A stretch of DNA of 43,362 nt from positions 1 through 43,362 of the forward strand of contig NIVC01004522.1 in NCBI GenBank assembly GCA_002269645.1, read 5' to 3'. How positions within the stretch are numbered: the first letter of the stretch is position 1; every line of letters begins with the position of its first letter. This DNA is from Macrostomum lignano (lineage: Eukaryota). The notes under the pieces were generated by a model that had not been told where the DNA came from, ran no database searches, and saw nothing but the letters and a program-made list of their open reading frames with translations. Below, piece by piece: positions 4,180-41,100 of this stretch. The position numbers were made by a program, and so were the translations under genes.

Positions 4180-7167
4180 ATGCAGCAAGAAGTCGTTAGC
4201 GATGAACGTGGAGAACTTTTACATGTTGATTCTGATCAAGATAGCGAACAGAACCTCAGTAGCACTGCAGCTATAAACTCAGACAGTAATGAGCAACACA
4301 ATGCCGAAACGCATTGTACTTCACTTAAAGACAACTGGGAGTTGATTACTAAAGAGACCATTCAAAAATTGTCTCCCGGAGACGTGATAAGCAGAAAGTA
4401 CTGCGGATTCAGTTACAGGATGATTGTGGACAGCGTCGAAGTAAAAAAAGACGCAAACGAAAATTTTGAAAAGGCGACAATTAGTGCCATTTACTACGGT
4501 AGGCAGGGAATTAAACGCCGGATAGTTCGCGATGTTTTCAGTATTCAAGCGGATGGAAGCTCATCGGTCTTAAAGCCGAAATGTTGGCTTCAGCACCAGC
4601 CAAATGAATGGTGCTACTCACCTGAAGTTGTGGTTCAGCGAGCTCGGAGCCGTGTAAACGAAGCTCAGCACTCATTTTTTGGAAACATGGCTTCAGACTT
4701 CGTCAGGTGGTGCAAAACCAGGTGTTCCAGCCATCGGCCAGATAACTTAGTCCCGATTTACGTCTCTGAAGATAATAAGAATATGATTCACTCCGTGAAA
4801 TCAGGCGACCATCTGGAAGTCAAATGTGCAGGACGCGACAGATTGCACTGCAAGGTCTTGACGACCACTAAATTAAACAATTCAAAGTTTGAATTAACGA
4901 TGAGAGCTACTTCTGTTGATACAGGAACTAAGCACATCAGGATGGTTCACGAACGAAAAATTGAGCTGCAGAGAAACAAGTTAGTAAAAGTAAGCGTCAA
5001 CTTGCAAGGTATCGATTTGTCCAATCGCACTGAAAAAATAAACAACCTGATCTACAAGAATAAGCGAGCTAGAATGCACGATTTCTGCTTGCATCTGACC
5101 AACCCTAACATGTCGGATGAGGAATGGATGCAAACAGTGGTCGACGTGCCTAAAAGACATTGGAGTTTCCGAATTCGATTCTTTAAACCTACAAAGCCTG
5201 CCGAAAATCTGAACAAAGGAGACATTGTATATATTCAGGGCCATTACCAAGTTGTAACTAATGTAGCGTTCAACGATTCTAAAGTCGAAATTACTACTAT
5301 GCTGTATGGAAAAAAAGAATTAAAAGCCAATGAACCGATCGAAGTAAAGCTTGCCATTGAAGCTAAAGAACGGGACGCGATTCTCTGCGTACACAATGAC
5401 GCCGCATTAGACTGCCCTCTGGAAGGTGGAGGACGAAAGAAGCCAAGTTACACTTTCGAAAGAATCAAGGATTCAGCTCAGATACAGAAAGGGTGTACAA
5501 TCAGTATGAGAAGCGGATCCCCACTGTTTAAACACTGTATCGTTTCCAGTGTCGCAACAGACAATGAGAGTGCTACCGAATCTGAGAGTGCTTCTGATTC
5601 TGAGTTTTTTGTTGAATCTTCTGATATAGTATCTTTTAGTGCCATTTCATACGAACTAGGATCACTCATAGCAGAGAAAAGCTTCACTTTAAATGTCTCG
5701 AAGAGCACAATCTATCGAGTGACCTACAATGTCTCAGATAAAAGCATGTACTCCAGCAATGAAGTCGTCGAAAGAGCCCGCTCACGCCTGGGCGAGAGGC
5801 AGCACAACATCCAGTGGAACAGCAGAGGGGACTTCGCTCGCTGGTGTAGCATCAAGCACCAGAGTAATCGAGAACAGACCCGCGTCCCCGTCAACTCTGC
5901 TGATGAACTCCATGCATTCAAGCAGGGTCACGTTAGATTTTTGAAGCTCCTTCCGTACTCGCATCACGCAATTCTAAGGGATTGCAGCAAAGTAGAAGGA
6001 TGCAATGATATCTTGAGAGTTAGCATGTACGAGAACAATGTTGCTTATAAATGTGTCAGAAAAGAGCAGCTGAATATTTCAGAGAACGAAACCGTTCGAC
6101 GAGTAAGGTACGCAGAACGTCGCGAAGTCAACTCTGCCAGTGTCGAGCAGCTACTCGGCCTCACATTCTTAAACGCGGACGATGATCGGCTTGGGTTCAG
6201 CGGCCCAATCGTTAAGAAGTGTGGCAGCAGAGTAAAGAGTGAGGATTTCTGTTGCTGGATTAAAACCAGCTACTGCGAGAGAGGAGAAAAGGCAGTTCAA
6301 GAGTTGTTCGATCAGAGTACCCGAAAACAGGTGGAAGTGGAGGAGATTGGAAGAGACAGCGTCAATATTTTTGACCACATCATTCTCACTCGCAAAGCTA
6401 ACGGAAAGGACATTGAGGTTCATTTCATTGTCACTAAGTGGGATTCAATTGCGTGCACTGGTGTCGGTATGACGTACGAGTTTTCCGCTGAAAAGGTCGG
6501 CTTAAGATTTAAGAAGTTCGATGGCTTTCTGCGAGTGACGGGCCCGGGTCACATTGAGAAAGTGGTGCACAACTCCGAGCTCAACTGGGACCAAATTGAT
6601 GCCAAGTTTAAAGAGCTGGAAGGAATTGAGGAATACAGCCTACTTTTTAACAACTGTGAACATTTTGTTAATTACCTGATTTATGGCCGCCTTACCTGCT
6701 CTCAGTTAAGCCGGGTGACAGGCCTTGGAACAAAGTATGTACTGAGATTTTTGCGCACTATAATGGTTTATGTTTTTCGATTTTTTAAAGGATTTGGAAA
6801 ACAATTCTCATCATTTTCTCCTGTTGGTGATGTGATTGGCACCATTCCAGATGGATTAACATGGTGGTGCGAGGGTTTAGGCCTTGGTTTCATTGCGCTG
6901 ATGATCATTAGCTCGATCGTCTGGCTTCGAAAACGTCAAGCAGACTTGGCCATGCCTGATCACGAGTTTAAATATCGATTGATCAACATCCTGTCCATGG
7001 GAGGCTGTGCGCTTCTAGGAGCTGTCTTAGCATTCGGACTGGTTCACGTGTTGCTACTGTCAAGTTGGCCAGCAATTTGCCTTGGTGTCGGAATCGGTTC
7101 ATTTGCGGCAGTAGTCGGATACTTCGCTCCTAAGCTCTGGGCACTTTTAAAATGCCTTAGGCCTTAG
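4180..7167 (+). CDS. Multi-LRAT-domain membrane protein A (995 aa): six tandem LRAT/H-NC-like modules, last with intact H...NCEHF, about 3 C-terminal TM helices
   Basis: Single uninterrupted ORF. Terminal module has EVHF (His 6421-6423) and YSLLFNNCEHFVNYLIYG (Cys 6655-6657). Upstream modules keep GDVI/GDHL/GDIV starts and EVVxRARSRxxE...FxxWC ends. Hydrophobic C-terminus (GLGLGFIALMIISSIVWL etc.). ATG directly follows TTACTTCAG. Confidence 0.88.
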   Translation: MQQEVVSDERGELLHVDSDQDSEQNLSSTAAINSDSNEQHNAETHCTSLKDNWELITKETIQKLSPGDVISRKYCGFSYRMIVDSVEVKKDANENFEKATISAIYYGRQGIKRRIVRDVFSIQADGSSSVLKPKCWLQHQPNEWCYSPEVVVQRARSRVNEAQHSFFGNMASDFVRWCKTRCSSHRPDNLVPIYVSEDNKNMIHSVKSGDHLEVKCAGRDRLHCKVLTTTKLNNSKFELTMRATSVDTGTKHIRMVHERKIELQRNKLVKVSVNLQGIDLSNRTEKINNLIYKNKRARMHDFCLHLTNPNMSDEEWMQTVVDVPKRHWSFRIRFFKPTKPAENLNKGDIVYIQGHYQVVTNVAFNDSKVEITTMLYGKKELKANEPIEVKLAIEAKERDAILCVHNDAALDCPLEGGGRKKPSYTFERIKDSAQIQKGCTISMRSGSPLFKHCIVSSVATDNESATESESASDSEFFVESSDIVSFSAISYELGSLIAEKSFTLNVSKSTIYRVTYNVSDKSMYSSNEVVERARSRLGERQHNIQWNSRGDFARWCSIKHQSNREQTRVPVNSADELHAFKQGHVRFLKLLPYSHHAILRDCSKVEGCNDILRVSMYENNVAYKCVRKEQLNISENETVRRVRYAERREVNSASVEQLLGLTFLNADDDRLGFSGPIVKKCGSRVKSEDFCCWIKTSYCERGEKAVQELFDQSTRKQVEVEEIGRDSVNIFDHIILTRKANGKDIEVHFIVTKWDSIACTGVGMTYEFSAEKVGLRFKKFDGFLRVTGPGHIEKVVHNSELNWDQIDAKFKELEGIEEYSLLFNNCEHFVNYLIYGRLTCSQLSRVTGLGTKYVLRFLRTIMVYVFRFFKGFGKQFSSFSPVGDVIGTIPDGLTWWCEGLGLGFIALMIISSIVWLRKRQADLAMPDHEFKYRLINILSMGGCALLGAVLAFGLVHVLLLSSWPAICLGVGIGSFAAVVGYFAPKLWALLKCLRP

Positions 7168-9827: not shown

Positions 9828-10160
<333 letters not shown>

Positions 10161-12332: not shown

Positions 12333-15300
12333 ATGCAGGCACTCGAAGGCTCGAAGACTGCACAGCGGCTGCCCCTTCAACAAGAGGCTGCAGCAGCTGT
12401 GGTGGCCGCCCAGCCGCCCGGCACCCCCGAGGCAGCAGCTCTGCAAGCTGAGAGACCTTCACCGGTAACAGGCTCAATTCAGAGCTTCGAAACTTTAACG
12501 CCGGAATCGATTCGAAATGTAAAGCCTGGAGATGTCATCAAAGCGTCAGGACGTTCTGAAGAAATCGTTGTTAAAGTTGAAGTCAAAGACGGATTCTTTA
12601 CATTTTCGACAATTTATCCCAAACTATGCAGAGTTTTCGGCCAAATTGAGAGACGAGTAATCAAAGACATATTAATAGTTAAAATTATAAATTCTAAAAG
12701 ATCAAAGCAGCTGAAACCCAGTTGCCAACTTCGACACTTTCCAAAATCGGGCTGCCATGCTCTTGACGAAGTTGTCTGGAGAGCTCGAAGTCTCTTGAAC
12801 GAGAAACGCCTTACTAATAAGTCAGGTTTCATACTTTGGTGCAAGACCAAAGACCAATCTCACAGGAAAAATTGTACCGTGCCAATTTATCTGCCTGGGA
12901 ATTTCGAAATCCACCAAGTGAAAGTTGGCGATCATTTGAGTCTTAAGCACGACTCTGGTTCAATTCATGCAGTCGTACGAAGTAGCCAAGAGATGTGCGA
13001 GGACATTTATTTACTATCGTTGAGTGTTTCCACGCAGGACTTGATGAAGGATCGAATTGCCTTTGTAAACATTTCTACGCGAAAATTTCTACAATCGAAA
13101 GAATCGAATGAGCGCGTTCCAGTTGTAATATCGGTATCAAAGTGCGTGGAGACTAAGGAATTTCTCCACAGGATCGAATTGATGCGCGGCCTCGCGTATC
13201 CGAGGCGCATTTCGACTCTGCAGTTTTGCCTTCTTCTCACCGACTCGAGTCGCCACGGGCAGGACTGGAGGCAGCAAGTCGCACAGGTGTCGAATCAGAG
13301 TAGACCGATTCGACCATTGACCCGAAAAATTGAAGCGAAAAATCTTCAACGAGGCGACATCATTTTTGTTGACGATGCCTACAGAGTAGTCTGCAGTGTA
13401 GATAGCGACAAGGATGAAGTCAGCGTTAAATTAGTCAACTACGTTGAAGTCGACCACGAAGATTGCAAGACTTGCACGCTAAAGTATCTGATAAAAAAGG
13501 AAGAGACGGAAACAACTCTGTGTGTGCATAATGACAACACCGCTGATTGCCCTTTGGACTTAGAAGAATCATCGCCGGTAAATCTCGCAGCCATCTGCTC
13601 AGAGGAACCGGTAACCCTCCAGTTGCTTCAAAAGCTACAGAAAGGTGACGTCATTTGCCTGTGGTACACTGGCAAATGGCACAGGGTTATCGTGAAAAAT
13701 ACATTGTCACCGCTATTCATTACGGATCGAAATCGTGGCTTGACGGTAAAGCAGTGATCAGAGAAGACTTTGTTTTTACGAGTAAATATGACAGACCGGG
13801 AACTAAGCAGGTGCATCCGAAGTGCTTTCTCTGCCACTTCTCGGATCTCTGGTGCCACGAGCCCGATGTTGTGGTTGACAGAGCTCGAAGCCGCCTCAAC
13901 GAGCAGGAATACTCTCTGATTGCTAACTGTGGCACTCGGTTTGTCATGTGGTGTAAGACCAAGTCCATCAGCCACAGAGCTGACAACTCGGTGCCCATAT
14001 TTCTAGATGGCTTTCACACTCACGAAATTAAAGAAGGTGATCATCTTGAATTTAGCTGTGGTCTAAAAAACAGACTTCACGGAGAAGTGACCAAAGTAAC
14101 TAAACTGAATAATGGGCGAAAACTTTTTCTCGAATTGCAAGTAATCAAGCCCCATGAATTGCATTACGTGCACACAAGCGAACTAGTGCTCAAAAGGGAT
14201 GAGGCAGTGACTCGAGTCATTCAGTATCAGTCTCGTGTCATCAGTGAAGCTGAATTGACGCGACGCATTGAGTTCATAGAAAATCTGGCCTTCAACCACA
14301 GTGAAAGTTCATTCAAAATTTGTCACCTTGTGATGAACAACGATAGAAGATTTGATGATTGGAAAGACAGCATTTGGGATGCATTGACTCAAAATGCAGT
14401 GCAAAGCAATCGGCCCGAATTGGTTGAGAGTGTTACTCCCAATCATGACCATGATGGCCTTAGAGTTGGCGACATCATACACGTGAATGGTGTCTACCGG
14501 GTTGTTGCGGGCGTCAGTGCCGGCAGCGGTCAGTCATCCGGACAAGTCAGCATTAAAACGCTCCACTATGGCTCTCAAAAACAAAATTTGTGTGTGTCAA
14601 AATTAAAGTACATCATTGATTCTGAAGAGAAGGACGCCAAGCTGTGCGTACACTATGATCCCAGCTTAAACTGCCAATTGTATGGCGGTGGTAGCCAGGC
14701 ACCAGCACATATGGCTGAAGAAGTACATGATATGCAAAGCATTTCAGCTGGCTCGGTCATTTCTTGGAGAGACAATCGGCATTCTCTGTACCAGCACGCT
14801 GTGGTGGTCAGAAACCCGGTGCTACCGGATGCGAACAATCCCCACTGCGCTAAAATCGATGTCATTTTTTACAGAGGTTCGTGGAGAGGTCAGATTGAGA
14901 GGCAAACTTTATCAGTAGACTTGAAGAAGCAGAAAATTTACACGATTAAGTACAACGTACTGGAAGGCTGCGTTCTCACCCCAGAAGAGGTGATTAAAAG
15001 AGCCAACAGCCGACTGAAAGAGAAGCAGCACAACTTCCAGTGGAACAGCAGTCGCGACTTTGCTCGCTGGTGCAGCATCAAGCATAGCAGCAACAGGGAG
15101 CAGTGCGCAGTTCCCGTACACTCGGCGAAAGACCTTCTTAAGTTCGAGAGAGGCCACATAAAGTTCTACAAGTCGCCTTGCTTTTACAAGCACGAAGCAA
15201 TTATGCGCAGCTGCTCTGCAGTAGATGGCTGCAGCGATATTGTTCGGGTCGAGTTGTACGAAAACAATCACGATCAGAAACAGGTGCGATTTGAAAAGCT

Positions 15301-16447
15301 CGTCATTGGCCCGGGTGAGAGCTCGATTCGACGCGTCAACTACTACGGCTTTGAAGAAGCCACTGGTTTTGCTATTCTGCAGGAGCTGACGGACTGCACG
15401 TTTTTGAATGCCGACGACGACAGGAAGGGATGGACTGCGAAGGCCAAGAAGTTTGGCAGCAAGGTTTGCAGTCGGGACTTTTGCTTCTGGCTGAGAAATA
15501 ATCATGATGCCGATCGGATGTGCGGCATTCAAAGCCTGTTCGGTACTGACCTGGCCGAAATTCAGGACAAAATGAAGAAACTTATTAGAGAAAAATCACT
15601 AAAGGTTTCGGAAAGTAATCAAAAAGTTGAACTCGAAGACAGAGTTGATAGACGCAGTCTCAGGCAATACGATCACATTATTCTGAATCGGATGGTCAAC
15701 GGAGTAGTTTCTGAGGCTGATTTCATTTTAACCGAGTGGGATGCTGCCACTTGTTCCGGCGTTGGGGTCACGTACGCATTGCCGCAGGATCCAAAAGACA
15801 TGGGAGTCGTCAAGTTTCAAGGATTTCTTCGAGTTGAAGACAATCAGATCGAGAAGGTCGTGCACAACTCCGATTTAGACTGGAATCAGATCGACGCCAA
15901 ATTCAATCAACTGTGTGGCAGTAGGAGTTACAGTTTACTGTTTAACAACTGCGAACACTTTGTCAACTATTTAATTTATGGCCGGGTGAGCAGTACTCAG
16001 CTGAATAATCTAGCCTGGCGTTTTAGCCACTTTTTACCCAACGCGGTGCAAAGCATTGCTACTGCTGCAGTTCGAATCCTACGATTAGTCTACACCTTGA
16101 TGGAGACGGGAAGTTTGAACACAGCTGCTTCACTTCCCTTAGTGCTGATTGAGGGCGGCTCGGTGCTTTTAATTGCCCTTTTGGGTATTGCATCATATCT
16201 GCTTTTGCAGCATCGCAAAGCGAACTTCAATATGCCTCAGCAGGAGTTCCTCGGCAGAAGACGTGACATCTTGTGCCGCACTTTGGTTCCAATATTTAGC
16301 GTAATCATTGTTGGAGCCGTCATTCACACTGCCCCGGTCAGTGCCCCCATTATTGGCAGCGCGGCTGGAGTCGGAGCACTGGCTGTTGGTCTTGCTTACT
16401 TCCTGCCAAGCATGCGCGCCATAATGATGGCGCGAATGAAACCGTAG
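12333..16447 (+). CDS. Multi-LRAT-domain membrane protein B (about 1371 aa if fused): nine modules, one -1 frameshift near 13695-13702
   Basis: ORF 12333-13757 encodes three modules plus the start of a fourth (LQKGDVICLWYTGKWHRVIVK). ORF 13655-16447 continues that module (IVTAIHYG...VVDRARSRLNE) through YSLLFNNCEHFVNYLIYG (Cys 15950-15952) and the TM helices. ATG directly follows CAATTTCAG. It may be an intact gene with an assembly indel or a real frameshifted allele. Confidence 0.75.
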
Positions 16448-17587: not shown

Positions 17588-20500
17588 ATGGTAAGTTCTT
17601 TCGCTTGTTACATGTAACTAAAAATCGACAATGTTATACACACAATACCACGAATATCTTTTCTACTTTTAGGAACAAACTCAGAACCAGGGAATTTTCG
17701 TTTCCGCTGTAGCCGAAAACACGACTGAAAGTGATGCTGTTGAAGCTGACGAACTCGCTACCGCTTGTGATGCGCCCTGCGAATCAACCGAGTCACAAGC
17801 CGATACGGCACCACGGGTGTATTGCTACGAGGAGAGGCTCACGTGCGAATCAATCAAGAATGTTGCCATTGGCGACGTACTAGAAATCCGATACTTTGAA
17901 CTGCCGCACAAAATTATCGTGGAGAACACGAGCATCGTTGACACTGAGCAGGAGTTGATCATCACCATCGATGCCATTCACTACGGAAGAGACTGGCTTT
18001 CTGTCCAGGTAATGAGAGAAAAATTTCAATTCATTGCTCGAAAAGACTCATTGGATCCCGGTGGGGCGCTGAGCAGGAAATGCTGGAAGTGTCACTTCCC
18101 ACCAACCTGGTGCCACCCACCCGATGTGGTAGTGCAAAGAGCTCGAAGTCGGCTGAACGAACGAGAGCACTCGGTCATTGACAACAGGGCGTCTCATTTT
18201 GCATTTTGGTGCAAGACCCAGTCGGTTAGCAATCGTGCGAACAATATTGTACCGATCTTTGTAGCCGCTAATCAGCACATTCACGAAGTGAAAGTTGGCG
18301 ACCATTTGAATTTTGCGACAGACGGTGAAATTGAATTACACGGAGAAGTTAGAGATGCTGTCAAGGCGAGTGAGTCGCAGGTTTTGTTAACTATGCTAGT
18401 GTCGAGTAGACACGTGAACAGAGAAATAATCAACTCTGCGCACATTTGTGAAACTAGAATTCAAAAACCAGTCCAAGTTGTAAAATCAGCTGCAATTGGT
18501 CTGACTAGTGAAGATTTACAATGGCGAATCAGAATGATACAGGATATTTCCTACAAGCGTTTGGTTGGAAAACTTGCCTTCTGTCTACACCTGACCAATC
18601 CTAACTTAAGCAGGGAAGACTGGCTTTGTCGAGCTATCCAGGTTCCAAACGTCACGAAAGAAACTGCGCAACCACTCTGTAAGACCATTCGCCCAGAGCT
18701 GTTGAATCCAGGCGACATCATACTGCATGACGGCATATACTCAGTGGTGTCTGCAGTCAGATGCGATGGCTCAGGTGCTCTGATAACTAAAATTCAGTAC
18801 TCTGCCCGTCGAGTAAACAAAAATGCTCATAACTGCCTGTTTGAAATAAAAATTGCTATCGAAAAATACGAAAGACAGGCTGTGCTTTGCGTTCACAAAG
18901 ACATTTTCCGAGATTGTCATCTGTACGGTGGAGGACTTGAAACACCCAGCTACACTGTAACCAAGGTGACGAGTGTGAATGAAATTTACAAAGGGTGCGT
19001 CATTAGCACCAGAGACGGCTTAGTCTTCAAACACTTGGTTGTCACCGATTGTCCCAAAATAATTAGTACACCGGCAATGAAAAACCAAGTGATGTTTAGC
19101 GCGATTTCCTACAATGTAGGACCTTCTATGTTGCTCGGAAAAAATTCCGTCGCCGAGAGCAGCTACACAATAAATTTAAGAACAACGCCAGTTTACGTTA
19201 TGAAGTACTGTGTCTCGAACGAGGTTCTCTACTCAACTGAGGAGGTGGTTCTTAGGGCTCGCTCGCGTCTGGGAGAGAGACAGCACAACTTCCAGTGGAA
19301 CAGCGGCCGAGACTTAGCTCGATGGTGCAGCATCAAGCACCAGAGTAATTTGGAACAGGGCATCGTTCCTGTTACCTCGGCAGACGATCTGCATCGTTTC
19401 CAAAGAGGACACATCAAATTCTTGAAGAAGCCGAAGTCTCTCTACGCGCACAATGTTCTTCTCAAAGAGTGCAGTAAAGTTGAAGACTGCGACGATGTGC
19501 TGAGAGTGATATACTATGAAAATAACGTCGTTTTCAAGCATGTCCGCATTGAGAAGCTGGACATTGGAGAAGATGAGCACCTCCAAAGAGTTCGGTACGC
19601 AAGCTGTCGAGAATGGAACCAAGCAGAACTAGAAAATCTGATTGATCATACGTTTCTAAATGCGGATGACGATCGGCTGGGCTACCTAGGAATGCAAGGC
19701 AGCAGAGTGACTAGCCAAGATTTCTGCTTCTGGATAAAAACTCGCTTCTCAAAGGATGGCATCAAGGCAGTCAAAAACTTACTCGGCGAGGAGTTGGGGC
19801 TGTTAAGGAACGAACTGAAAGTCAAGAGGAAGGACACGGAAACCATCGTAGGTGGACGAAGCCTAAAACCGTTGGATCACATCGTTCTTAGGCGCACTGT
19901 AGCTGGTAAGGAAGCAGAAGTTCACTTCGTCATCACGAGCTGGGATGCAAATTTATCTACCGGCTATGGAGTAACTTACGAATTTCCCGTAAAGAAGACC
20001 GAAATGGGATTCTACGAGTTTAAAGGCTTTCTCAGATTAACTGGCCCAGGTCAGATCGAGAAAGTGGTGCACAACTCAGAATTCAATTGGGATCTAATTC
20101 AAGAAAAGATTCGAGATCTGCGCGGAGGCGAAGATTACAGCATTCCGTTCAACAATTGCGAGCACTTTGTCAACTACTTGATTTATGGCAGAGTTGTCTG
20201 TCTGCAGCTAGTTAGGCACTCGAGGAGGCTGTTTGGCTTTGTACCGAGTTTTCTACACCATTTAGCTGCCGATGGCATTAACTTCCTGAAGTTTGCAATG
20301 CACCACGCGTCTGGCTTAAGAAAAGTCGGCGTTAAAATTCCAATTTTTGAGAGCGTTGGCCTAGTTCTTAACCTTGTAATCGCCGGCTGTCGATTTCTGC
20401 AACTAATCAGGCGTCGGGCTCGAACAGCCATGCCACACGAAGAGTTTTCGATGCGAAGACGTTATATTTTCGTGGACGCGATTTCGTCAACATTCGGGGT

Positions 20501-20627
20501 TTTATTGGCTCTTGTTTTGATCGCAGTGCAGGCTACTGTATTTACACCGCTCACTCTGTGTTCCGCACTCATCGGGTACGCGTTGTTGAAGCTGATTCCC
20601 TTGGTAAAATCAATTTTTGTGCCTTGA
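17588..20627 (+). CDS. Multi-LRAT-domain membrane protein C (985 aa): join(17588..17590,17673..20627)
   Basis: ATG|GTAAGT donor at 17591 and CTACTTTTAG acceptor at 17672 (82-nt phase-0 intron). Exon 2 is open from 17673 (EQTQNQG...). Same six-module layout as A: EVHF (His 19923-19925), FNNCEHFVNYLIYG (Cys 20157-20159), hydrophobic C-terminus. Confidence 0.85.
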
Positions 20628-21970: not shown

Positions 21971-29217
<7,247 letters not shown>

Positions 29218-29364: not shown

Positions 29365-29775
29365 CAAGAATTACCCCTAGATATTTCTAAGAATCACCCG
29401 TAGATATTTATATGAATTGCCCTAGATGTTTCTAAGAATTGTCCCTAAATATTTCTAAGAATTACCCCTAGATATTTATATGAATTACCCTTAGATATTT
29501 CTGAGAATCACCCCCAGATATTTATTAGAACTGCCCTAGATATTTCTAAGAATTGCCTTATATGTTTCTAAGAATTGTCCCTACATATTTCTAAGAATTA
29601 TCCCTAGATATTTATATGAATTACCCTTAGATATTTCTGAGAATCACCCCCAGATATTTGTTAGAATTGCCCTAGATATTTCTAAGAATTGCGCCTACAT
29701 ATTTCTAAGAATTGCCCCTACATATTTATATTACTTGTCAATTCATATTTTTAAGATTGTCCCTAGATATTTATA
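29365..29775. repeat. Degenerate ~21-22-bp minisatellite (AATTGCCCTAGATATTTCTAAG) just 3' of the Rab2 stop
   Basis: Directly visible. Confidence 0.9.
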
Positions 29776-30676
29776 AGAGGGGCCTGTAAATTAAAAAAAA
29801 TATTTTTCTTCAACGTTTTGGGGAATTTAAAATCATAAGAATTAAACAAAAAACTATGTTGAGTTTGAATCTGATACAAATTATCTGTAATACCCGCTTT
29901 AAATAATTGCATTGCAAAATTCGGATGTCAGATTAAAATTATTTTGTTTGTTTCAACGTGCCCAAATTTGTCTTGTGTTGTGCTTTAAATGGTTTTCTTT
30001 GTTTTAATTATGCATGACTTATACTCTGAGCAGCCCATTTTATTGATGACTTTCTGCTGTTGATGGGCAGTGAACTTATTTTAGAAAATCCCAAATTGCT
30101 TTATTATTTTATTCAACTGTGTTGTGTTTCAATTAATTGCTTTACCTTGAGTAGTTTGTCACCACCGTTACCTTTTAGTCTGCTGATGTTGTTTTCCTCT
30201 TTTTTATTTCAGCTTTCTGAACTGATTTTATTAATACAGTTTCTAACTTTGTTATATTTGTTATTATTGATTTTATTTTTGACTCGTATTAAAACAAAAT
30301 TCCATAGAAACTTAGCGATATAATTATTAGCCAAGTTCCGTTTTCCGTTTTACTTTGCACAAATGAAAAAAAATTGTCACACAAGCGTTGGTAAGACTGT
30401 CTGAGCTGGTGAATAAATATTCGTTATTGATGATCAAATATTTGCCACAATTATATTCTGGTCCCAAAACCCTCAGCAGGGATTTTGCTTACAAAAACAT
30501 GAGAACAATGTTTTATTCTCAACTTGTATTGTGCTTATTATATTCCAATAATATATATTATCTAGTTGATGTTGTTTGAAATCAGTTTTAAACATCAGGT
30601 TTTACACAGTCTCTGTTTATTTCATTTTATGATCAGTCAAATTTGGTGTTAAAAAAGCAATGTACAATTTTTGAAC

Positions 30677-32408
<1,732 letters not shown>

Positions 32409-32767
32409 AAAACAGTGACAAGTGGGAATGAACTACAAAAGTACAGCTGAACTTTCGCAGAAACTTTTCTTTATTGCCCATTTCCGCTAGCATTTCGTAA
32501 ATAGATAGCTCGATTGATACACTTGTGATTGCATCTAGAACTTGCCTCATTTTAAAGTCAAAGTTCGGAAGTTCAGATGGTGATTTAAATGAGATTTTTG
32601 TTTTGGTAAAAAGCTTGAGAATTTTCTATCACGCACTGAAATTCCGTCACCTTGAGCTTCATTAGTAAAGTGCAATGTCACCAGAGTAAACAGACTAGCA
32701 CGAACTTATATCGTGTGCTAAGTATCATCAGTCGCTTTCTTTAAGCCCTTATAATAGTAATTTCAGG

Positions 32768-38100: not shown

Positions 38101-41100
38101 CTGTCGCAGCACTTCAGAACATGCAGCCATCAGCATTGGCAGTTTCGGCGTTGGAGCGTCTGCTGATGTCGGGTGCTTTGATCAGCAGCTCTGATGGCAG
38201 AAGACTGCAGGCTGCCATTGTACGCGCCTTGCTGCCCAGGTTGGAAAAAGGCACTTGTCCAACTAACAGAAATTGGTGAGTCAATCATGTTTTTTTAAGT
38301 TGCAGGTAATTTTACCGAGGGATGTCGCGACAGAAGTCGTTACGAGTGTACCCTTAGCAACGTTGAAAACCGCCAGAGCAGTGGCCGAGCGATTGACTTC
38401 AGCTTACTACTACAGTATGCAGATGATGATGCAAGGTTTTTTAACGCTCGCTCGGGTTGTCTAGGGTGTAGGGTGGCGGTTTTCAATGTTGCTAAGTATA
38501 CATAATGAGGGGACCTTAGGGGTTGTAGCCAAGTGGTTAGAGCGTCGGACTCACAACTGAAGGTCAGGGGTTCGATTCCAAACCCACTGGAACAATTTGT
38601 GCACTTGAGCAAGACACTTAACTCTGCATTTTTTCAGTTAACCCAGCTGTAAAATGGTTACCAGCATTAGCTGGGGTAATTGACGGTGCGTGTCGCGACC
38701 CCCCAGTCCTTGGATTGAGCAGCCGTACGCAACCTTCAGATGCGCCGCGCAATAGCTGCGGCTGAGCTCTCGGTTGCACATCTGGCCCAATTGTAATCAA
38801 ATACCATTAATATTACTATCGCACAACAACAAATTTGCAGCCTTCTTAGTTCAGAACTGTGTTCTTCTGAAAGGCTTTTTGATTTAATAAACGTTATAAA
38901 GTCAATTTATTCATATTTTATACGTCCGGTACAGTGACTTTGAACTGCTAATTTTATTAATAAAGACCCTAATGACACTAATATTTCAGTCCAACGTCTC
39001 TCTCCACTGCAATCGAACGCTTGTGGAACAGCAGCAACCCAGCTGACGCAGCCTTAGCCACTTACGCACACTCTGTCGCTCGGAAACGGCTCGAAAAACT
39101 GGAATCGTCACTTTCACAGGACTCTGCGTTGAAAAGCGACGCAGCTCTGAGGCAATTGCGTCAATTGGTGGAGAAACCTCCGGCGCTTTTCTCCATCGAC
39201 CGGGCGTCGAAACCGTCGGTTCGCGCCGACAGGTTTCAGCTGGTAGACGGCCTGATTGATATCAGCTATGAGATTGACTGGGAAAGCGCTGATGCGGTGA
39301 TAATCTCGATGCCAACTCGAGCCGAGTTTCAACTGACCCTACATAACCAGATGACTGGATTTGCTGTTCCACTGCTGGATGCGGAATTGATTCGACGGTT
39401 TTCTAACGGCCCAGGTGATCATACGGCGGTCATCAGAAGAAGAGGCGATGTTACTGTAGCAGTTGACTGGACAGGCGAGTCTTCTATTGGCGATTTGCAG
39501 CGGCTTCTGTGGGACGACACGTGGATGTCTGCGACAATTGAGTCTGTTTTGATGCCGACAACATTGCAAGTGACTACAAGCCTTGGACAGGTAGGGAAAC
39601 CGAATCTTCAACTCTCCTAAGATAAAAAATCACAAAAAACGAAAACTAGAAGTACGCAAAACTTGCGATTTTTTGCGAATTTCGTTAAAGACAGGGTTTT
39701 AGCTGCAAAAATGCTTCAGCAAAATAGAAATTTTCATATTTTTTCACCGCTAACTTTGCAATATCTGGAGCCATTTATACTCGTAGAACAGATATTTCTC
39801 GACCGAAGTGATGGAAGTTAAGAGAAAGCCTCCTCTTTTTGAAGTTATCTGCTTGAAACACGTGATTCTATCTTTAATCTTCAGCCATGTTCACTCGCAG
39901 GCCCTCTTGATATCAAGCGAGGCGGCACTGATTGCAAATAGCGGTGTGTCACGGCGGCCACCGTCTGTGACTGAGAGCTTTCGAACCGATGCTCCGTCAT
40001 GCTGCAGCCGAGCTTCTCAGTTTATGCCAGTCGCTCAGTCCATCTATCAGGGTTGTCCATGGGCAGGCGGAGTTCGCGTTCAAGTGTCATCATCGATTGG
40101 GCATCTCTGGCGACGGCGATCTCTCAGTGAGCTGTTCTGGCGCTGGCAGACTTCTGATGGATGGGGCCTGTCTGTGGGTCTTCGATCGCCCCTGCAACGT
40201 CAGGAGCTGCTCAGAGTGCGCTTGATGAGTGTTCTGGCTGAAGGCAAGAATGATGCGAAAAATCCAGTGTTTAATGACACCTGGATTTCTGAAAATCAAG
40301 ACGACATTTCATCAAGACAATCTTGGCAGTTGTGCATGCGAGCTTTTTCCAGAACTATCACGGGCCACAACATTTGCGCCAGCGTTAAAAAGCAGAGACA
40401 GTGGAGTAAGTTTAGTCTAATTTTAGAGCGACAGGTGAGTTTATAATCTGTAAACGATATTTAATAAGGTTATAAAATACCTGGAGGGTCTGGGGGGAAT
40501 ATGACGGGGTTGTAGCCTAGTTGGGGGTTAGCCTAGTTGGGGGTTGTAGCCTAGTTGGGGGTTGTAGCCTAGTTGGGGTTGTAGCCTAGTTGGGGGTTGT
40601 AGCCTAGTGGGGGTTGTAGCCTAGTTGGGGGTTGTAGCCTAGTTGGGGTTGTAGCCTAGTGGGGGGGTTGTAGCCTAGTGGGGGTTGTAGCCTAGTTGGG
40701 GGTTGTAGCCTAGTGGGGGGTTGTAGACTAGTTGGGGGTTGTAGCCTAGTTGGGGAGGGTTGTAGCCTAATTGGGGGTTGTAGCCTAGTGGGGGGGGTTG
40801 TAGACTAGTTGGGGGTTGTAGCCTAGTAGGAGTTGTAGCCTAGTGGGGGGGGGGTTGTAGCCTAGTTGGGTGTTGTAGCCTAGTGGGGGGTTGTAGCCTA
40901 GTGGGGTTGTAGCCTAGTGGGGTTGTAGCCTAGTGGGGGTTGTAGCCTAGTGGGGTTGTAGCCCAATGGGGGGTTGTAGCCTAGTGGGCTGTAGCAGTGG
41001 AGGGTTGTAGCCTAGTGGTTAGAGCGTCGGACTCACGACTTGAAGTTCGGGTTCGATTCCCGATCCAATGGAACAATTTGTGTCCTTGAGAAAGACACTT

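Follow-up and report, generated by a model that had tools for sequence, protein, structure and literature searches.

The 43,362-nucleotide contig NIVC01004522.1 of the flatworm Macrostomum lignano (NCBI GenBank assembly GCA_002269645.1), whose whole length is referred to here as the window, carries three long reading frames arranged in tandem on the forward strand, which we call genes A, B, and C. The explanation that we favor for the product of gene A and its paralogs, with somewhat more confidence than doubt, is a membrane-held PLAAT-like enzyme with one active site, located in the sixth of its LRAT-like modules, and with five selected modules that lack the catalytic Cys and would serve as its non-catalytic partners. 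The solid part of this explanation consists of the homology of the modules, the residues found at the triad positions, the purifying selection on the modules, and the hydrophobic tail of the protein. The A-type proteins are an uncharacterized and new architectural variant of the LRAT/PLAAT family.

A Pfam scan of the gene A protein identified LRAT (PF04970) as the sole family, with 56.8 bits against a gathering cut-off of 24.3 bits. In a module-by-module scan of A, module 6 passed this cut-off alone (33.2 bits), modules 4 and 1 fell below it with 20.2 and 16.7 bits, and modules 2, 3, and 5 gave no match, either in A or in any of the seven M. lignano paralogs that were aligned. BLASTP of A against itself returned no internal repeats, and profiles built from the three paralogs A, B, and C detected only the relationship between modules 1 and 4; a profile of the wider LRAT-like family was needed for the others. 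This profile is an alignment of 303 domains, built from the relatives recovered by an exhaustive profile search (440 relatives from 1.84 billion representatives), and it was compared with module profiles of seven M. lignano paralogs each. All six modules scored against it, with values from 27.8 to 208.9. In a comparison with column-shuffled controls, the scores of 36.8 for module 2, 33.7 for module 3, 27.8 for module 5, and 49.0 for module 6 stood against nulls of 9–11 ± 2 with a maximum of 17.3; the individual nulls were 9.3 ± 1.5 for module 2, 9.3 ± 1.6 for module 3, and 11.1 ± 2.0 for module 5, where the maximum of 17.3 was reached. The alignment of module 5 to the family profile places YSHHAIL on YAHHAIV and KSEDFCCW on NCEHFCNW, and the profile of A, B, and C matches the PDB chains of PLAAT2 and PLAAT3 over the NCEHF helix of module 6.

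The full-length AlphaFold model of A, calculated from the seven-sequence alignment, has a mean predicted local distance difference test score (pLDDT) of 67, with module cores at 70–89. Every module in this model is made of five strands followed by two helices, except that in module 3 only a short helix follows the sheet. The counterparts of the module 6 helix beginning at Cys826 begin at Ala171, Met299, Arg549, and Ser687 in modules 1, 2, 4, and 5. The only meaningful matches of the full-length model in Foldseek are the PLAAT3 structures 4dot, 7zom, and 7c3z (probability 0.91–0.98, template modeling score 0.55–0.61), for which the E-values are weak (0.1–0.5) and the matching module is unspecified. 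From the profile comparisons and the model we conclude, with most confidence for modules 1, 4, and 6 and with less for modules 2, 3, and 5, that all six modules are diverged copies of the LRAT fold. The original prediction, made from the nucleotide sequence of this stretch, had treated the region at 4345–6700 (residues 56–840 of A) as an array of repeated modules, and the Pfam matches to modules 1, 4, and 6 and the profile scores above the shuffled controls show that these modules are real homologous units.

Modules 1 and 4 are clear paralogs (99.4% in hhalign), and at a permissive alignment threshold modules 1-2-3 are collinear with modules 4-5-6 over 327 columns, in which GDIV pairs with FDHI, DFC with DFC, and LCVHND with KVVHNS. 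Gene B carries at its N-terminus one additional copy of exactly modules 1-2-3. This collinearity and the extra block in B indicate that the duplication unit was a block of three modules, and module 3 appears from the alignment to be a module 6-type copy that has lost its Cys helix.

In the PLAAT proteins the catalytic Cys lies at the start of helix 3, in the motif NCEHFV, and is accompanied by a His on strand 2 and by a second His, or Asn in PLAAT1, on strand 3 (PMC10102619). Members of the superfamily share an invariant Cys/His pair and, in addition, a polar residue, and mutagenesis of LRAT suggests that the strand-3 residue may be dispensable (PMC3142127). We mapped the three triad columns by alignment and by the start of the helix in the model; the residues in each column are listed in Table 1. 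In modules 1–5 no Cys stands in register in any of the seven paralogs. Module 6 of A has His748 on strand 2 and Cys826 in NNCEHF at the N-terminus of the helix, in the permuted order; the strand-2 His is present in both A and C. Its strand-3 column is occupied by Thr765 according to an alignment whose register is insecure here, and by Arg or Ser in distant paralogs. Module 1 of A reads Tyr79/Tyr105/Ala171 (NMASDF). Module 2 keeps His223 and has Met299 at the Cys position (RMHDFC), followed by a conserved Cys303; module 4 keeps His452, with Ser490 in the strand-3 column and Arg549 at the Cys position (NSRGDF), where B has Ser and C has Gly; and module 5 keeps His595, with Ser687 at the Cys position (KSEDFC).

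The motifs on which the original prediction was founded are all present in A, namely NMASDFVRWC (169–178), RMHDFCLHL (298–306), NSRGDFARWC (547–556), VKSEDFCCWI (685–694), and NNCEHFVNY (824–832), with no equivalent in module 3; NSSRDFARWC and NCGTRFVMWC in B and NSGRDLARWC and NRASHFAFWC in C also read as quoted. Its central claim, that the last module alone keeps the catalytic Cys, stands: Cys826 and His748 occur together in module 6, the only module to pass the Pfam LRAT cut-off by itself. The description of the five others as pseudo-enzymes holds for the nucleophile Cys, which is lost in all five, and needs to be qualified for the remaining residues, as modules 2, 4, and 5 retain the strand-2 His and module 5 has Ser in its Cys column. 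As enzyme-fold homologues without the Cys required for catalysis, modules 1–5 would be classed as pseudoenzymes.

Two sets of Cys residues were considered as substitutes and rejected. The NCGTRF of gene B might be taken for an intact NCEHF motif; it has six residues from N to F, compared with five in NCEHF, and an ungapped alignment anchored on N and F places Gly in the nucleophile column, so that the Cys falls one position early and out of register. A further Cys follows the lost nucleophile position by four or seven residues on the same helix in four modules of A (Cys178, Cys303, Cys556, and Cys691; window positions 4711, 5086, 5845, and 6250). This helix Cys is invariant in modules 1, 4, and 5 and present in six of the seven paralogs in module 2; the corresponding positions of module 6 are occupied by Val or Leu. 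It was rejected as a replacement nucleophile because it lies one to two helical turns further in, and judging from helix geometry alone the four residues probably face the core.

Module 6 of gene B (at about 15580–15620) keeps NCEHF and has Asp in place of the strand-2 His of A and C (SEADFILTEW, compared with IEVHFIVTKW). P0003, the intact copy of B from a second M. lignano locus, shares this Asp and reads NCEHL. As the catalytic His is replaced by Asp in module 6 of both copies, even an intact B may be inactive.

Consideration of substitution rates gives insight into whether the Cys-less modules are retained. In comparisons of A, B, and C the proportion of nonsynonymous differences (pN) is 0.27–0.56 in every module, well below the proportion of synonymous differences (pS), which at 0.70–0.88 is saturated. 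Because of this saturation the ratio of nonsynonymous to synonymous substitution rates (dN/dS) is unusable between A, B, and C, and it was calculated instead for recent pairs, using the near-copies A', B', and C' carried by the second locus (NIVC01001606.1, L001). For modules 1–5 of B/B' the ratio is 0.41 (68.8 nonsynonymous to 42.2 synonymous changes, where neutrality would give about 3.3:1), and the nonsynonymous changes are about half of the neutral expectation. The pairs A/A' and C/C' give 0.53 (18 nonsynonymous and 9 synonymous changes) and 0.44 (8 and 5), with few substitutions in both, and the extra 1-2-3 block of B gives 0.38. Amino-acid identity between paralogs is 40–58% in modules 1 and 3–5 and 24–36% in module 2; modules 4 and 5 (41–58%) come near to module 6 (50–58%), and the linkers and the tail have 10–25% and 22–27%.

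These values suggest that the Cys-less modules are kept by purifying selection, under a constraint that is moderate and not strong. The expectation that the modules are under selection is therefore supported by pN values well below pS and by ratios of 0.38–0.53 in the recent pairs, and neutral evolution, the outcome that would have spoken against it, does not describe modules 1–5 of B/B'. The strong conservation that had been noted for the dead modules holds in part. RARSRL, FLNADDDR, and the other motifs are indeed invariant in A, B, and C; part of this conservation, RARSRL.E, is a structural helix found throughout the family, which active PLAAT-type modules have as well.

Among the best conserved stretches is the end of module 3 (residues 403–422 of A, window 5386–5445), with the motif LCVHND..DC.L.GGG..P, in which His405 and Cys412 are invariant in the seven paralogs. 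Module 5 contains an invariant acidic insert, TFLNADDDR (residues 662–670, window 6163–6189), between the last strand and the helix equivalent to the Cys helix. As the most conserved motifs that are not shared with the family, TFLNADDDR in module 5 and LCVHND..DC.L.GGG in module 3 are candidate functional surfaces. The Cys/His spacing of the module 3 motif might suit metal binding. The TFLNADDDR insert adjoins the degenerate active site of module 5, and the loop after it has low model confidence.

The predicted helices at residues 839–992 of A follow the catalytic module, with hydropathy peaks at 896, 934, and 954, and this tail aligns with the tails of B and C, with MP..EF..R in common. The N-terminus of A is acidic and has no signal peptide-like start. 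In the PLAATs, both membrane targeting and function depend on a C-terminal hydrophobic domain (PMC10102619), and the predicted helices make it likely that the hydrophobic tail of A is also a membrane anchor. In the mechanism that we propose, A, B, and C are tandem paralogs in a branch of the LRAT/PLAAT (permuted NlpC/P60) family that has expanded in M. lignano. The multi-helix C-terminal tail would hold each protein at the membrane, and since there is no signal peptide the modules should face the cytosol. The active site of module 6 would adjoin the membrane, where acyl chains of a phospholipid may be transferred or hydrolyzed via a thioester on Cys826. The five upstream modules would have arisen by duplication of the three-module unit, losing the nucleophile Cys and keeping the fold, and would most likely form a non-catalytic scaffold that binds lipid, acyl chain, or protein and thereby positions, gates, or targets the single active site. 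We infer the topology, the enzymatic chemistry, and any regulatory role of the A-type proteins from these features, and the lipid binding, autoinhibition, and decoy sensing suggested in the original prediction as roles for the upstream modules are guesses.

Among the 440 relatives, the six-module type occurs only in M. lignano paralogs (P0003–P0006, P0009, and others), and module types 2, 3, and 5 were likewise found only in this species. The type shared by modules 1 and 4 is present in up to nine copies in proteins of bivalves (Potamilus, Mytilus, Mercenaria, and Dreissena) and in one protein of the hemichordate Ptychodera. The bivalve architecture consists of one His-His-Cys module, two to three hydrophobic helices, and one to eight His-His-Ser modules with the motif N-R-S-x-H-F; it is seen in P0007, P0008, P0010, and about 100 others, including transcriptome proteins. 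The region spanning the Cys helix and the hydrophobic block has a homologous counterpart in the relatives P0040 and P0052, whose order is the reverse of that in A: Cys module, hydrophobic block, Ser modules. In the 303-domain alignment the Cys column holds Ser in 148 of the modules, and both His are kept in 120 of these 148 (81%), compared with 55% of the Cys modules. The His-His-Ser pattern of the wider family thus looks like a maintained set rather than decay.

The bivalve and hemichordate multi-module proteins, among them KAK3603616.1 of Potamilus, XP_076105740.1 of Mytilus, and XP_053378500.1 of Mercenaria, resemble modules 1 and 4 with E-values down to 1e-49. Like the flatworm proteins they combine one Cys module with several Cys-less modules, and the Cys helix and hydrophobic block are homologous. 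In the bivalve proteins, however, the Cys module comes first, whereas the flatworm modules precede the Cys module and have lost most of the triad residues. A tentative reading, which we regard as doubtful although deserving of attention, is that the LRAT / NlpC-P60 superfamily has an undescribed branch, to which the Cys-less modules belong, in which Ser replaces Cys and both His are kept (N-R-S-x-H-F), with many copies per protein in bivalves, always beside one Cys module and a hydrophobic block. Should the Ser modules be active or bind ligand, the flatworm proteins would represent a more derived state of a membrane machine with two chemistries, and not an enzyme carrying dead weight.

Within the flatworm proteins themselves, some of the upstream modules could use another nucleophile, which would make A a multi-site enzyme rather than a single-site enzyme with inert partners. 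The candidates are Ser687 with His595 in module 5, the Ser in module 4 of B, and the adjacent Cys in module 1 of B. Ser occupies the Cys column of module 5 in A, B, C, and P0004, His595 is kept in six of the seven paralogs, and module 1 of B keeps both His (His/His/N-C-G); the frequency with which Ser modules of the wider family keep both His, in a pattern that resembles a maintained triad, points the same way. However, the Ser of module 5 is replaced by Asp in three of the seven paralogs, the corresponding column of module 4 holds Arg, Gly, or Asp in three paralogs, and neither module has the strand-3 His; module 1 of A, moreover, is Tyr/Tyr/Ala, and the Cys of B is one position out of register. 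To our knowledge, and short of an exhaustive search, no LRAT or NlpC/P60 enzyme with a Ser nucleophile is known, and this also counts against a multi-site enzyme, which we consider unlikely. Our own view, from the residues in the triad columns, is that we think modules 1–5 of the flatworm are mostly inert, because they are more degenerate than the bivalve modules.

Modules 2, 3, and 5 might also be unrelated small beta-rich domains inserted between the LRAT-like modules 1, 4, and 6. Consistent with such insertions are the missing Pfam matches described above, direct module-to-module comparisons that are mostly insignificant, a confident alignment limited to the N-terminal 27–40 residues in modules 2 and 3, and a Foldseek search with the poor isolated model of module 5 that gave nothing. 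Against this, the profile scores lie 8–18 standard deviations above the column-shuffled nulls, module 5 is aligned over 102 columns that include both the strand and the helix motifs, the order of strands and helices is the same across modules in the full-length model, and the block 1-2-3 is collinear with 4-5-6; we regard insertion as improbable. More improbable still is that the upstream region is a decaying repeat without function, or that the genes are pseudogenes, with the conservation a result of recent common ancestry. It is true that gene B in the window is frame-shifted by a 22-nt deletion, that dN/dS is not very low (0.4–0.6), and that the family is lineage-restricted and rich in copies. 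Yet A and C are uninterrupted open reading frames (ORFs) of 995 and 936 codons both in the window and at the second locus, where an intact B is also found; synonymous sites are saturated while modules 1 and 3–5 keep 40–58% identity, compared with 10–27% for linkers and tail; and modules 1–5 of B/B' have only about half of the nonsynonymous changes expected under neutrality.

Several points weigh against a membrane-held enzyme with a single active site, the explanation that we prefer. The Thr in the strand-3 column of module 6, together with the Asp in module 6 of B, implies that the 'live' module may not be a standard PLAAT. With the strand-2 His in modules 2, 4, and 5 and the Ser in module 5, some of the upstream modules could be catalytic. 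Ratios of dN/dS of 0.4–0.5 would reflect only moderate constraint. The full-length model, with a pLDDT of 67, provides a prediction of medium confidence, and the isolated model of module 5 is poor (pLDDT 57); its Foldseek matches are meaningless and were not used as evidence.

Comparison with known systems places the A-type proteins close to PLAAT1–5 (HRASLS) and LRAT, with which module 6 shares NCEHF, the Cys at the N-terminus of the helix, the upstream strand-2 His, and the C-terminal hydrophobic membrane segment. Those enzymes, however, are one domain of about 130 amino acids with one transmembrane helix, whereas A has five extra Cys-less modules and three to four helices in the tail, and their strand-3 residue is His or Asn, whereas module 6 of A has, by alignment, Thr. 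LRATD1 and LRATD2 (FAM84A and FAM84B) are vertebrate LRAT-domain proteins regarded as non-catalytic; the likeness, an LRAT-fold domain kept without an enzymatic role, is drawn by analogy only, and they differ from A as single-domain soluble proteins without a linked active domain. A dead copy of a catalytic fold kept by selection beside a live copy is familiar from the D1 and D2 domains of receptor tyrosine phosphatases and from the kinase and pseudokinase of JAK. These systems differ from A in fold and chemistry, and A has five dead copies for which regulation is only proposed. PTPRU provides a comparison case for chains with active and pseudo domains (bioRxiv 10.1101/805119).

A literature search found nothing on multi-module LRAT proteins, Macrostomum LRAT genes, or bivalve LRAT-domain proteins, and all of the relatives have database names of the 'hypothetical' or 'uncharacterized' kind. 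PLAAT and LRAT enzymes remodel and rupture membranes in lens organelle clearance, picornavirus entry, pathogen restriction, and retinoid storage, and every characterized member that we know of has a single domain. One live and five selected Cys-less copies of the LRAT fold in one chain therefore offer a system in which to study the non-catalytic use of this fold, a question that is also open for vertebrate LRATD1 and LRATD2. We rate the A-type proteins as a variant and not as a new kind, because active and selected inactive copies are well known in other enzyme families and LRATD1 and LRATD2 each consist of one inactive LRAT domain. A Ser-for-Cys LRAT-like branch with a maintained triad would be the more novel possibility, and the bivalve His-His-Ser sets raise the testable possibility of Ser-based LRAT-like chemistry. 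The LRAT/PLAAT-like family of M. lignano is lineage-expanded, tandemly duplicated, and unannotated, so that the study of enzyme evolution and of flatworm and mollusc biology would benefit most; these proteins do not bear on any wider open question.

Table 1. Genes A, B, and C in the window, the modules of gene A, and the residues in the triad columns of each module. One-letter residues are given in the order A, B', C, P0004, P0005, P0006, P0009.
Feature	Position in window	Strand	Residues of A	Description	Strand-2 His column	Strand-3 column	Cys column
Gene A (BOX15_Mlig034298g1)	4180–7167	+		Single open ORF, 995 aa: acidic N-terminus, six LRAT-like modules, hydrophobic C-terminal tail
Module 1	4342–4743	+	55–188	LRAT-like; Pfam LRAT E 0.009; hhalign 100% against family profile, 99.4% against module 4	Y H H H R H H	Y H H H H H H	A G A A S P A
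Module 2	4744–5133	+	189–318	Five strands and two helices; hhalign 89.6% over 27 aa of the GD..H box	H in 6/7		M F L S K S Q
Module 3	5182–5451	+	335–424	Truncated: beta-sheet half, without Cys helix; hhalign 88.5% over 40 aa	H in A only	L H Q Q Q R D	No Cys helix
Module 4	5452–5877	+	425–566	LRAT-like, paralogous to module 1; Pfam LRAT E 7.5e-4; hhalign 99.9%	H in 6/7	S F S S M Y C	R S G D S S S
Module 5	5878–6294	+	567–705	hhalign 55.7% over 102 columns; model helix starts at Ser687; no Pfam match	H in 6/7	M L Y L I C L	S S S S D D D
Module 6	6343–6714	+	722–845	PLAAT/LRAT-type catalytic module; Pfam LRAT 33.2 bits alone; hhalign 95.9%	H in 6/7 (Asp in B)	Thr in five paralogs	Cys in all five covering the column
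C-terminal hydrophobic tail	6715–7164	+		Four long predicted helices (839–992), three strongly hydrophobic
Gene B	12333–16447	+		Nine modules, 1-2-3-1-2-3-4-5-6; two frames, 12333–13757 and 13655–16447
Gene C (BOX15_Mlig027402g1)	17673–20627	+		Main exon, six modules as in A; module 1 is His/His/Ala

Word-indexed homology searches matched only the window's own two hypothetical 'LRAT domain-containing' M. lignano proteins. In the deposited model of the A protein (P0001, 871 aa), a splice after residue ~852 shifts the frame, and the hydrophobic tail is missing. Since reading straight through the ORF gives a tail alignable with those of B and C, the annotated intron (around 6735–6900) is probably wrong. 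For gene C, a small upstream exon encodes the first ~17 amino acids of the annotated protein. The deletion in gene B lies just after ~13692, as seen by comparison with the intact 1379-aa copy at the second locus (L001 10001–14140), and causes the frameshift; both halves around it are otherwise open, and gene B in the window may be a young pseudogene or an assembly error. Divergence within the pair B/B' (dS ~0.09–0.13) is far above that of A/A' and C/C' (~0.016). The second locus also holds an extra partial, frame-split B-like copy between B' and C' (L001 14848–17101), which has no counterpart in the window.

Elsewhere in the window, eight tested ORFs of 150–250 aa gave no Pfam match. The stretch at 22000–26000 is AT-rich, with a GC content of 0.29–0.30 compared with 0.40–0.58 elsewhere, and has no long ORF. 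Positions 30683–32408 are made up of about 45 copies of a 38-bp satellite; it is purine-rich on the forward strand and accounts for the overlapping minus-strand 'ORFs' at 30617–32550 and for the strong GC and AT skew there. Further repeat arrays are (AG)n at 9828–10160, 31 bp x27 at 26742–27560, 20 bp x22 at 28292–28743, 23 bp x16 at 29366–29727, and an 18/35 bp array at 40506–41016.

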